Part shown: piece after piece, positions 17,230 to 49,310 of the stretch
Layout: each line of letters starts with the position of its first letter
How positions within the stretch are numbered: the stretch's first letter is position 1
Sequence record: PV261924.1
Reading direction: 5' to 3' (one strand)
Length of the DNA stretch: 64,000 bases
The notes under the pieces: generated by a model
Seen by the model: the letters and a program-made list of their open reading frames with translations, nothing else
Database searches by the model: none
What the model was told of the DNA's origin: nothing
Made by a program: the position numbers and the translations under genes

Positions 17230-17340
17230 AAAAGTAAGACCATCAGGGAAATGGTGGAGTTACTATTTCCTCGTACCCTTAACGAGGATATGAAAGACGT
17301 GTTTATACTCCCTAGAGGTCTTGGTTTAAGGGGAGTTTAG
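17230..17340 (-). ncRNA. Structured psbA leader, likely PhotoRC-II-type motif
   Basis: Hairpins CCTCGT..ACGAGG, ACCAT..ATGGT and CCT-CTAG-GG in the 5' UTR; this family is known upstream of cyanophage psbA. Confidence 0.5.
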
Positions 17341-17369
17341 GTAAGTCAGGAAACCCTGACCTGTCCATG

Positions 17370-44947: not shown

Positions 44948-45298
44948 TTATAGTCCCTCCGTGACTCTACCATAATCATCCTGAAGTCTGATGATATCGT
45001 CTTCTCTACAGTCTCCTGACTGAACCTCAAGGAACATAATCCCTTCTGGTCCAGCCTCCATCCTATGAATCATATTCCTAGGAATGTGGAAATGATTTTC
45101 GTGTCCTGCAGGAAATGTATGATTACCAAGAGTGACTCTACCAAACCCAGACAATATAAACCAGAATTCGCTTCTGTTCTTATGTTTCTGTAGGGACAGT
45201 TTCTGGTTGGGAGAGACTTTAATTCTTTTGATGACCCTGAAAGGATTTCTCTCAAGGTCAACATAGAATCCCCATGGTTTATCAACCACGTTCATCAA
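44948..45298 (-). CDS. Mannose-6-phosphate isomerase type II-like cupin
   Basis: KPWG, LSLQKHKNRSEFW, LEVQSG..EDDIIRLQDDYGR. Confidence 0.88.
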   Translation of the reverse strand: MMNVVDKPWGFYVDLERNPFRVIKRIKVSPNQKLSLQKHKNRSEFWFILSGFGRVTLGNHTFPAGHENHFHIPRNMIHRMEAGPEGIMFLEVQSGDCREDDIIRLQDDYGRVTEGL

Positions 45299-47630: not shown

Positions 47631-47702
47631 TGGGAGTTACAAGATTCGAACTTGTGACCAATTGCGTGTAAAGCAACTGCGCTACCGCTGCGCTAAACTC
47701 CC
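47631..47702 (-). tRNA. tRNA-Val(TAC)
   Basis: GTTGC-TTTACAC-GCAAT; acceptor GGGAGTT/AACTCCC. Confidence 0.92.
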
Positions 47703-48106
47703 TTAGGATGACCCCCATTTTTGTATCTACCACCTTTACTTTTGTTTGGTGGTAATGTCTTTACTGCATGGCAGTTAGGACACAATACCTGGAGATTATC
47801 TTGACTGTGATTGAAGGGGTCATTATCTATATGGTCAATCTCCAGTGGCACATTACCAGTGTGTGGATTTACCTGAGACCAACCACAACAAGAACATTTA
47901 TAATCACTTTGTTCAAGTAAATATCTTCTTACATGGTTGGATACGATATATCCGTTACCCCCTGGACCTCCCTTCTTCCACTCTTCAACAAACAAATGTC
48001 TGGAGTGGTCTGACTGGCACTTACTACTACAATACTTGCCCTTCTTGTGATGGGGATTGTATGTGAATTCAGTGCCGCAAGACAGACAAGAGGAGGAGAG
48101 TAACAT
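47693..48106 (-). mobile_element. Free-standing HNH endonuclease gene in the tRNA cluster
   Basis: CLSC/YCSSKC, CSCCG, LEIDHIDNDPFNHSQDNLQVLCPNCH; own TATAAATA late promoter at 48127-48134; 3' end overlaps tRNA-Val. Confidence 0.85.
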
Positions 48107-48151
48107 AATCTGGTAGAGTGGTGTTTTATTTATAAACAACACTACTACCAA

Positions 48152-48223
48152 CTGCCCCGACTGGATTCGAACCAGTAACCTTGAAGTTAACAGCTTCCTG
48201 CACTGCCGTTGTGCTACAGGGCA
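48152..48223 (-). tRNA. tRNA-Asn(GTT)
   Basis: GAAG-CTGTTAA-CTTC anticodon arm. Confidence 0.9.
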
Positions 48224-48228
48224 TTTAC

Positions 48229-48423
48229 CTAACTGGATTTCTCCTCTTTAGCGGTCTTGAAGTAAAGTTTGTAATACCGTTGTTTCATTTCTGAAATGGT
48301 ATTCATGTCCTCTTCATACCCCATGTATTTAAGGAGTTGAAAAGAACCCTCAAGTTCACTGATCAATCGTAACATATTGATTGAAGATCTGTCAAGACCT
48401 CCGAACGTGTACTCTTTACTCAT
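48229..48423 (-). CDS. Hypothetical protein between tRNAs
   Basis: MSKEYTFGGLDR...LRLISELEGSFQLLKYMG; GGAGG SD. Confidence 0.65.
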   Translation of the reverse strand: MSKEYTFGGLDRSSINMLRLISELEGSFQLLKYMGYEEDMNTISEMKQRYYKLYFKTAKEEKSS

Positions 48424-48439
48424 AAACCTCCTAGGAGGA

Positions 48440-48512
48440 TGGAGAATAGGAGACTCGAACTCCTGACAGCCTGCTTGCAAAGCAGGTGCTCTACCAACTG
48501 AGCTAATTCCCC
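48440..48512 (-). tRNA. tRNA-Ala(TGC)
   Basis: CCTGC-TTTGCAA-GCAGG; G3:U70 pair. Confidence 0.95.
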
Positions 48513-48588
48513 TGGAGCCACTCACAGGACTCGAACCTGCGACTTGAGCTTTACAAAAGCCCTACTCTACCAACTGAGTTAGAGTGGC
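48513..48588 (-). tRNA. tRNA-Thr(TGT)
   Basis: GGGC-TTTTGTAAA-GCTC; encoded CCA. Confidence 0.93.
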
Positions 48589-48590
48589 AT

Positions 48591-48779
48591 GGGTTGGGCA
48601 GAAGGATTACATTATACCTTCAACAGAGGGGTCTCACTAATGTAGTAACGCCTCTGAACTTTCAGGACCCTTGGTATGGGTTCTCATGCCTCCTGTCTCC
48701 AGGTCACATGGTGGCCACCACAGCCTTCCTTACTATACAATGTTGGGTGCTTGACCACACCAACTTTTCTGTCATACCC
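48591..48779 (-). ncRNA. Candidate structured ncRNA between tRNA-Arg and tRNA-Thr
   Basis: No credible sense ORF; several hairpins incl. CCUG-GAGA-CAGG and CAGAGG/CCUCUG; 5' and 3' ends complementary. Confidence 0.55.
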
Positions 48780-48801
48780 TATGGAGATGATCAATCTCCA
48801 A

Positions 48802-48875
48802 CGACTCAAGTAGGATTCGAACCTACGACCGACTGCTTAGAAGGCAGTTGCTCTAATCCGCTGAGCTACTGAGTC
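48802..48875 (-). tRNA. tRNA-Arg(TCT)
   Basis: ACTGC-CTTCTAA-GCAGT anticodon arm. Confidence 0.95.
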
Positions 48876-48889
48876 ATGTGGACCCTTCG

Positions 48890-48918
48890 ATTATAGAGGA
48901 GGGTCAATCCTCTGTCAA
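48890..48918 (-). promoter_or_regulatory. Consensus sigma70 promoter of the tRNA operon
   Basis: TTGACA-N17-TATAAT; spacer contains hairpin GAGGA/TCCTC. Confidence 0.85.
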
Positions 48919-49310
48919 GGACGAAACTGACCGTAACCAGTTCCTGATTGCCAACCACCAGGACCTTCTTGGAAGTTCTCAGAACCACCTTGTGTCTCTT
49001 TGACAGTGGTCCAGTTCTTAGTCGCCAACTCATACATCTCTTGATGAATGTTTGGTGACTCGACCTGGTGAGTGGTCTCCCTCTCGACCTTCTTATTATG
49101 GTCGATCTCCTTCTGTTTGTCAAGGGCCTTTTTGGTGAGGACTGGTTTTCCAAACCAAGGATCCTCAGGAAGAATGACAGGTGCAGGAACAGACCTGAAG
49201 GGTGTGAAAGGTTTCACAACCTTACTTACAACCTTTTTAATAATACCTTCACTTTTAGGAATAAAGATATTATAGATTGATTTGAGTTTAGTCTTAATCT
49301 TCTTAATCAT
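48915..49310 (-). CDS. Hypothetical protein
   Basis: ORF track; GGSENFQEGP.GW.SG tail. Confidence 0.6.
   Translation of the reverse strand: MIKKIKTKLKSIYNIFIPKSEGIIKKVVSKVVKPFTPFRSVPAPVILPEDPWFGKPVLTKKALDKQKEIDHNKKVERETTHQVESPNIHQEMYELATKNWTTVKETQGGSENFQEGPGGWQSGTGYGQFRP

Follow-up and report, generated by a model that had tools for sequence, protein, structure and literature searches.

The genome of Synechococcus phage RN05-S (PV261924.1) carries a spacer between its genes for tRNA-Arg and tRNA-Thr at which the GenBank annotation is empty. What does this spacer encode, and what would it do inside a tRNA operon? We addressed this question in a window of 64,000 nucleotides (nt; record positions 62001-126000), to whose coordinates the positions below refer unless another locus is named. 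A preliminary description, made from the letters of the window, had proposed a novel structured RNA of about 190 nt here and had held that a hit to an existing Rfam family would make it known rather than novel. In an Rfam model search, window positions 48800 to 48591 on the minus strand matched the manA RNA (RF01745) over model positions 1-192 of 192, scoring 77.8 bits (gathering threshold 55.2; E = 4.3e-18). No second Rfam family matched this stretch in an Rfam-wide search, even at E ≤ 10, and our own covariance model (R1) scored 123 bits at 48591-48801 on the same strand. The window element is a full-length member of the manA RNA family, described in 2010, and therefore belongs to a known family rather than a new one; what GenBank leaves unannotated is the RN05-S copy. 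The RNA lies exactly where it had been placed, at a corrected length of 210-213 nt, and the open reading frames (ORFs) of 41-92 amino acids that overlap it run across conserved RNA helices and the adjacent tRNAs. New are the exact fill of a tRNA spacer behind a perfect sigma-70 promoter, the abutment of tRNAs in 25% of family contexts and RNA cycles in which the two ends of the element are joined.

The manA motif was first described by Weinberg et al. 2010 (PMC2864571) in T4-like cyanophages and was considered a riboswitch candidate for its complex structure and frequent position in 5′ untranslated regions (5′ UTRs); the authors marked a 'pseudoknot?' in it, with weak support. It has been without a known function since 2010, still filed as a riboswitch candidate, and a 2023 phage paper calls its role unverified. 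A cryo-electron microscopy (cryo-EM) preprint of July 2026 reports that manA RNAs assemble in vitro, giving decamers, octamers and an icosahedral-like cage of 60 subunits, all built of pentamers held by intermolecular L5-L7′ and L8-L9′ kissing loops; a second class of manA uses L6-P6′ (GNRA-receptor), L5-L7′ and L3-L8′ contacts (10.64898/2026.07.01.735769). The preprint mentions neither tRNA nor an in vivo role.

We gathered relatives from IMG/VR with a degenerate pattern for the 3′ domain, which returned at least 120 stretches; about 115 among the matches listed are true manA. An nhmmer search with the window element alone recovers under half of the true relatives among these candidates, sequence alone being too weak. 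RNAalifold on a MAFFT alignment gave a mere 22 pairs, and the structure was therefore set by hand from column-pair statistics of 46 aligned diverse copies before the covariance model was built. This model finds one full-length manA copy per source in 93 of 93. In the 93-sequence alignment 92.9% of cells are paired, compared with 70.4% in shuffles; the covariation score of 0.541 (0.146 in shuffles) was reached by none of 500 shuffles and fell to at most 0.095 when partners were slid, and 45 of 59 pairs show changes on both sides. The preliminary description had named a lack of conservation or covariation as what would speak against the RNA; with homologues collected, the helices covary across 93 relatives. 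Folding of the window sequence by itself gives -68.3 kcal/mol (z = -2.0), a modest gain over shuffles: the structure is established by covariation, not by energy.

The overall fold has about ten helices and multi-way junctions, is pseudoknotted and includes two or three loop-loop contacts (Table 1). The closing helix P1 carries compensatory changes at its fourth pair (AU/UA/CG) and fifth pair (GC/AU). Loop L9 holds UAAUGUA, a perfect 7-nt complement of the UACAUUA in L8; this pair, picked out earlier as a possible kissing contact, is the L8-L9 interaction of the family, and its core covaries (CG 47, AU 37, UA 5; UA 68, AU 22; GC 61, UA 21, CG 5; UA 81, UG 6). Covariation also supports pairing of L3 with J8 (GGUC/GACC), in which the first two pairs are GC and GC, the third is CG in 60, UA in 14 and AU in 13 sequences, and the fourth is AU in 69 and CG in 16; it would be either a long-range pseudoknot or an intermolecular contact. 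L5-L7 (UGGU/ACCA) is conserved without covariation in the 93-sequence alignment. Most hairpins of the preliminary description belong to the conserved, covarying structure: GUUGG/CCAAC is P3, CCUG-GAGA-CAGG the tip of P6, ACCC/GGGU, as (A)CCC/GGG(U), is P7, and CAGAGG/CCUCUG and GAAGG/CCUUC are outer P8 and P9. The hairpin UGGU/ACCA drops out; it arises from a local 10-nt palindrome, GGUGGCCACC, and the family instead has UGGU in L5, matching the ACCA of L7. Pairing of the 5′ and 3′ ends survives as the closing helix GGGUA/UGCCC, without the added CAGAA/UUCUG, which clashes with P9. P0, the inner P8 (UUAC/GUGA) and the covarying pseudoknot GGUC/GACC had been overlooked.

Several loops vary within the family. 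The P0 loop of the window copy, UUGAUCA (48788-48794, minus strand), contains the 6-nt self-complementary UGAUCA. A 6-nt palindrome (UGAUCA or UAAUUA) occurs in 4 of the 25 distinct P0 loops of the family and GACG in most others; 4-nt palindromes, present in 9 of the 25 where chance would give 7.9, are not enriched, so that the 6-nt ones alone stand out. A palindromic P0 loop could link particles or pentamers by a two-fold contact. The clade of the window copy differs from the commonest one (for example L006:1378-1578) in its longer P6, which ends in a GAGA loop, and in an exchange of the L8 and L9 sequences, the commonest clade having UAAUGUA in L8 and UACAUUA in L9. In that clade L8 is able to fold on itself (CUAC-UAAU-GUAG) instead of forming the inner P8 helix, possibly an alternative state that competes with the kissing contact. 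Four divergent manA-like RNAs (L028:2971-3161, L057:3506-3696, L058:1979-2205 and L077:8185-8357; 57-63 bits with our model) retain P0, P1, P2/P3, P8, P9 and the L8/L9 complement and differ in the middle domain; the one in L058 lies 9 nt before a tRNA-Leu, in a locus with seven tRNAs.

In the window the operon runs promoter, tRNA-Arg, manA, tRNA-Thr, tRNA-Ala. The consensus sigma-70 promoter noted in the preliminary description is borne out by 12 of 12 matches, and the 2-nt gap that it gave between the element and tRNA-Thr by the coordinates from ARAGORN and Rfam; both ends of manA lie 0-2 nt from the tRNAs. The 3′ end of tRNA-Arg, a gene that encodes no CCA, would set the 5′ end of manA, and the 5′ end of tRNA-Thr, an RNase P site, would set its 3′ end. 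No terminator-like site was found within or behind the element. The position in a 5′ UTR before a protein-coding gene, on which the 'Cis-reg' type of the family is based, is not the position of this copy.

Across the family, ARAGORN was run on all loci, and the flanks of the first scan, dereplicated by flank sequence, were classified. Upstream (n = 81), 14 flanks hold a same-strand tRNA, 65 a sigma-70-type promoter and two neither, the last being divergent variants. The upstream tRNA always ends 21-23 nt before P1, which is 0-2 nt before P0, and the -10 box of the promoters mostly ends 27-28 nt before P1. A tRNA 3′ end or a promoter thus stands just ahead of the element in 79 of 81 flanks, which argues that the RNA would always start at P0, with either a transcription start or 3′ cleavage of the tRNA fixing that point. 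Downstream (n = 87), 13 flanks hold a tRNA, beginning 3-15 nt beyond the CCCA of P1, 10 an intrinsic terminator, 56 an ORF within 100 nt and eight none of these. Where both flanks could be assessed, 50 of 81 dereplicated contexts run from promoter to ORF, 20 (25%) have a same-strand tRNA on at least one side, seven of these on both, and six (7%) run from their own promoter to their own intrinsic terminator. Terminators lie directly behind the 3′ tail of manA or overlap it in L007, L044, L106, L008, L012, L013, L026 and L030; in the first three a fresh TTGACA...TATAAT-type promoter for the next gene follows. Judged by their sequence, such terminator-bearing copies read as stand-alone small-RNA genes.

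The tRNA partners vary, with Arg, Thr, Val or Ala upstream and Thr, Asn, Gly, Ala or Leu downstream, and on the manA tree at least eight changes are required to explain tRNA adjacency. Nearly all of the window's clade of 14 is tRNA-embedded, with inter-tRNA spacers of 211-214 nt in DNA. All 45 of 45 ACG-2014f genomes carry the element, as do four relatives of S-B43 type; in the ACG-2014f genomes it is flanked by tRNA-Arg and tRNA-Asn, neither of which RefSeq annotates. Flanking tRNAs are visible even in the first row of the 2010 seed alignment, and our literature search found no paper that discusses the tRNA adjacency of manA.

RNA from seawater bears on the ends of the element. Contigs of four RNA runs were aligned to window positions 48200-49200. 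The metatranscriptomes X15 and X16 contain 67% of the sampled words of manA, compared with 23-25% for a stretch of 481 nt that takes in the tRNAs. X27 and X29, which differ in study and library type, each yield one contig, of 242 and 243 nt at depths of 19.5 and 9.8, in which the 3′ part of manA is followed by CCCA or CCCAA and then by the 5′ start UUGGAGA...; the joint reads ...CUACCCACCCA(A) fused to UUGGAGAUUGAUC. Each contig begins and ends with the same 30 nt (k-1, with k = 31). An assembler working at k = 31 prints an isolated cycle with coinciding 30-nt ends, and the contigs are therefore closed cycles of 212 and 213 nt, lengths that match the DNA spacers of the window's clade. For a cycle to stand isolated, reads must run across the joint from the 3′ to the 5′ end, and reads that tie manA to its flanks must be rare; the cycles therefore point to a discrete RNA. 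The 3′-5′ junction was not found in IMG/VR or in 241 million metagenome records; the unjoined 3′ end is present in IMG/VR (four loci) and in the metagenomes (about 17 true contigs), always in linear sequence and mostly with a tRNA behind it. X15 and X16 contain linear contigs joining manA to tRNA, which we read as precursor or DNA. These observations suggest that relatives of the window copy occur in seawater as a discrete manA RNA whose two ends coincide with the tRNA borders. The proposal of the preliminary description that tRNA processing releases such an RNA gains support from the conserved spacing to varying tRNA partners and from spacer-length cycles in two metatranscriptomes. A second joint in X27 (window 48506/48809; 'skips 302', 18 foreign letters, 20-nt side) connects sequence resembling tRNA-Ala with sequence resembling tRNA-Arg; tRNAs of other organisms are its most likely source, and it is not a feature of the window locus.

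On balance we think it probable that the window manA is a discrete RNA, freed by tRNA processing, that self-assembles into a particle acting in trans during infection. The operon would be transcribed from the consensus sigma-70 promoter. Cleavage behind tRNA-Arg would be of RNase Z type, because CCA is not encoded, and an RNase P cut at the 5′ end of tRNA-Thr would then free the whole 212-213-nt spacer. P1 would clamp both ends of the RNA, and the manA fold would display the complements in L5/L7 and L8/L9, which in turn may pair between molecules to build pentamers and closed particles. The sequence prerequisites of the cage RNAs, namely L5/L7 and L8/L9 complements and a GNRA L6, are all present in the window copy.

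A number of points weigh against this account. Which enzymes do the processing is an assumption drawn from tRNA biology at large. Cages have been seen only in vitro, with other family members, refolded at about 3 mg/ml RNA in 10 mM Mg (10.64898/2026.07.01.735769). Covariation of L8-L9 looks the same whether the loops pair within or between molecules, and the L5-L7 contact lacks it; our model misaligns P4/P5 in the window's clade, where the L5-L7 counts are unreliable and are not leaned on. The 50 of 81 copies that lie between a promoter and an ORF starting 10-50 nt downstream present the 5′-UTR picture. The RNA contigs come from relatives 90-99% alike, rather than from an RN05-S infection, and give no read counts; the runs were picked for holding manA, which makes zero depth on neighbouring ORFs weak evidence.

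That same 5′-UTR-like position of most members is the reason for the published cis-regulatory reading, under which the window copy would be a regulatory element or riboswitch that senses a metabolite and controls a downstream gene. The candidate rating of the 2010 paper (PMC2864571) and the order promoter, manA, ORF in 50 of 81 contexts, with 10-50 nt from manA to the start codon, speak for it. We nevertheless judge it unlikely for this copy, which shows no expression platform of the kind that a riboswitch joins to its ligand-binding aptamer (terminator/antiterminator, or sequestering of the ribosome-binding site): two tRNA genes follow directly, an ORF (DUF7212) comes only after these, and a terminator-like site is absent. 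The genes downstream of manA across the family are functionally unrelated, comprising gp32, transaldolase, DUF6561, a 2OG-Fe(II) oxygenase, glycosyltransferase 11, a GDP-mannose-dehydratase-like (sugar-nucleotide dehydratase) enzyme and small unknown proteins. Moreover, a quarter of contexts abut tRNAs, and 7% stand alone, each ending in a terminator of its own and in some cases succeeded by a new promoter; the literature of 16 years reports no ligand, and RNA of the family self-assembles into closed oligomers (10.64898/2026.07.01.735769). A structured spacer that aids processing or stability of the polycistronic tRNA precursor, through its folding, order or protection, and is functionless after excision would account for the exact fill, with ends 0-2 nt from both tRNAs. 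Such a role seems quite improbable, given that the same core occurs in the 75% of contexts with no nearby tRNA and an own promoter, that some 200 nt conserved with pseudoknots go far beyond the needs of a spacer, and that the tRNA partners change between clades. The preliminary description had further suggested a 6S-like decoy that binds RNA polymerase holoenzyme, an idea which shares with manA only a size of about 200 nt and a likely stable, non-coding, discrete RNA. We rejected it, as the Rfam search at E ≤ 10 matched neither 6S nor any other further family; the multi-branched, pseudoknotted fold lacks the form of 6S, a long and irregular duplex whose central bubble resembles an open promoter, and solved homologues build RNA-only cages (10.64898/2026.07.01.735769), which leaves the decoy scarcely credible.

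The cycles themselves admit two accounts. To our minds the chances are even that they are an artefact of reverse-transcriptase template switching, or of a tandem DNA duplication that went unsampled, and that the RNA is linear. A few junction-spanning reads suffice for a de Bruijn cycle, and the depth given for a contig is averaged along its full length; template switching readily affects small RNAs that are abundant and tightly folded; P1 or oligomers would keep the 5′ and 3′ ends side by side; and linear contigs of X15 and X16 tie manA to tRNA. However, two library types from different studies agree in the kind of junction and in its place at full-length termini, the 212- and 213-nt units fit the spacers of DNA relatives, two very large DNA collections lack the junction, and every DNA locus searched has a single copy. 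Within those two collections and the 93 loci searched, tandem DNA copies are rejected as the source. Even as an artefact, the junction would mark the ends of a discrete processed RNA.

It is also possible, if rather doubtful, that manA RNAs of cyanophage tRNA operons are cut out precisely where RNase Z and RNase P cleave and then circularised covalently in vivo. RNase Z cleavage leaves a 5′ phosphate on the trailer and RNase P a 3′ hydroxyl on the leader; P1 would hold these two ends of the excised spacer together. In the first 50 kb of the GenBank annotation, looked through for an RNA ligase, almost all entries are 'hypothetical protein'. If so, manA would be a phage RNA that is naturally circular and forms cages, joining GOLLD and ROOL as the third cage RNA of tRNA islands, and its family would be wrongly filed as a cis-regulatory riboswitch candidate.

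Table 1. Features of the manA locus in the RN05-S window and of the flanking tRNAs in phage ACG-2014f
Feature	Position	Strand	Remarks
Sigma-70-type promoter, TTGACA-17-TATAAT	48890..48918	-	12/12 consensus matches
tRNA-Arg (tct)	48801..48876	-	ARAGORN; Rfam tRNA 48802-48875, 69.1 bits
manA RNA (RF01745)	48589..48801	-	fills entire 212-213-nt tRNA-Arg/tRNA-Thr spacer; Rfam match covers 48591-48800
P0, 5′-terminal hairpin GGAGA-UUGAUCA-UCUCC	48783..48799	-	96% of cells paired; 6/6 pairs covary
P1, closing helix GGGUA (48775-48779)/UGCCC (48596-48600)	48596..48779	-	encloses whole core; 99.8% paired
P3, GUUGG/CCAAC with loop L3	48742..48764	-	100% paired; 4/4 pairs changed on both sides
L3 GGUC, paired with GACC 48630-48633 (3′ internal loop of P8)	48753..48756	-	99% paired; covaries
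L5 UGGU, complement of ACCA in L7 (48672-48675)	48717..48720	-	about 92-95% paired; conserved
P6 tip CCUG-GAGA-CAGG, GNRA tetraloop L6	48692..48703	-	clade-specific extension
P8: outer CAGAGG/CCUCUG, inner UUAC/GUGA, 7-nt L8 UACAUUA (48638-48644)	48624..48656	-	96% paired; 7/7 pairs covary
P9 GAAGG/CCUUC, loop L9 with UAAUGUA (48608-48614)	48601..48621	-	P9 100% paired
tRNA-Thr (tgt)	48513..48588	-	ARAGORN and Rfam
tRNA-Ala (tgc)	48440..48512	-	ARAGORN and Rfam; directly behind tRNA-Thr, same operon
tRNA-Arg(tct) and tRNA-Asn(gtt) flanking manA	L168:1110-1183 and L168:1397-1468 (NC_026927.1, phage ACG-2014f)		ARAGORN

Some neighbouring annotations in the window call for comment; all lie on the minus strand. 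The 64-amino-acid 'tail fiber protein' of GenBank at 48229-48423 is a DUF7212 protein (116 bits), and the 131-amino-acid 'high light-inducible protein' at 48915-49310 has no Pfam match; both product names look wrong. The stop codon of the latter ORF, upstream of the operon, sits in the -35 hexamer of the tRNA-operon promoter. Between tRNA-Asn and tRNA-Val, an ORF unannotated in GenBank (47693-48151) carries HNH-endonuclease motifs (EIDHID...CPNCH) and scores 20.0 bits against Pfam HNH, slightly below the cut-off of 21.4; it is possibly a homing endonuclease within the tRNA array. A full-length wcaG RNA (RF01761; 44762-44865, 66.4 bits against 42), the other cyanophage 'riboswitch candidate' of the 2010 paper (PMC2864571), lies about 80 nt downstream of a coding sequence annotated as mannose-6-phosphate isomerase (44948-45295) and about 1.2 kb beyond the final tRNA of the cluster. 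A full-length PhotoRC-II RNA (RF01717) is present at 17255-17348 (75.7 bits against 39).

The window copy and a quarter of its relatives contradict the cis-regulatory filing of the family. In tRNA-embedded copies, tRNA-processing enzymes would excise manA to the nucleotide. Cages in vitro, embedding among tRNAs and end-joined RNA in seawater together shift the question from a ligand to a phage RNA particle near tRNAs. As RN05-S, S-B43 and ACG-2014f infect culturable Synechococcus, the role of manA is directly testable.

With the manA motif as filed (RF01745), the window copy shares its helices, its conserved loops (GUGGUG, ACCA and the L8/L9 complement) and the host group of T4-like cyanophages; it differs in lying between tRNA genes with no ORF to regulate, whereas the family is filed as cis-regulatory in 5′ UTRs. 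Of the contacts by which the manA RNAs solved by cryo-EM (manA_A0F1 and others) form pentamers, L5-L7′ and L8-L9′ both have their complements in the window copy, as UGGU/ACCA and a 7-bp L8/L9 match; its L6 is a GNRA loop, as in the class with an L6-P6′ contact. Those constructs are other sequences, studied only in vitro. 6S RNA is of similar size and non-coding and differs in fold, with no model match. RNAC and RNAD of T4 are small stable RNAs of a T4-type phage, described as 'RNAs of yet unknown functions'. At roughly 120-140 nt they are shorter than manA; they are reportedly encoded in the tRNA cluster and cut from tRNA precursors, and we know of no assembly behaviour in them. GOLLD and ROOL are phage and prophage RNAs, 'often near tRNA islands', that form RNA-only closed nanocages and whose function and protein partner are unknown (Nature 2025, PMC12286853). 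Neither family model matched the window manA stretch in the Rfam search at E ≤ 10. Both are unrelated to manA in sequence and fold, three to four times longer at about 600-800 nt, and build 8-mer and 14-mer cages of dihedral symmetry, whereas manA is pentamer-based. What they share with manA is a likeness of lifestyle, in being phage-encoded, tRNA-adjacent and cage-forming. Its genomic context ties manA to the cage RNAs of tRNA islands, and the same question of role hangs over GOLLD, ROOL and the T4 RNAs RNAC and RNAD.

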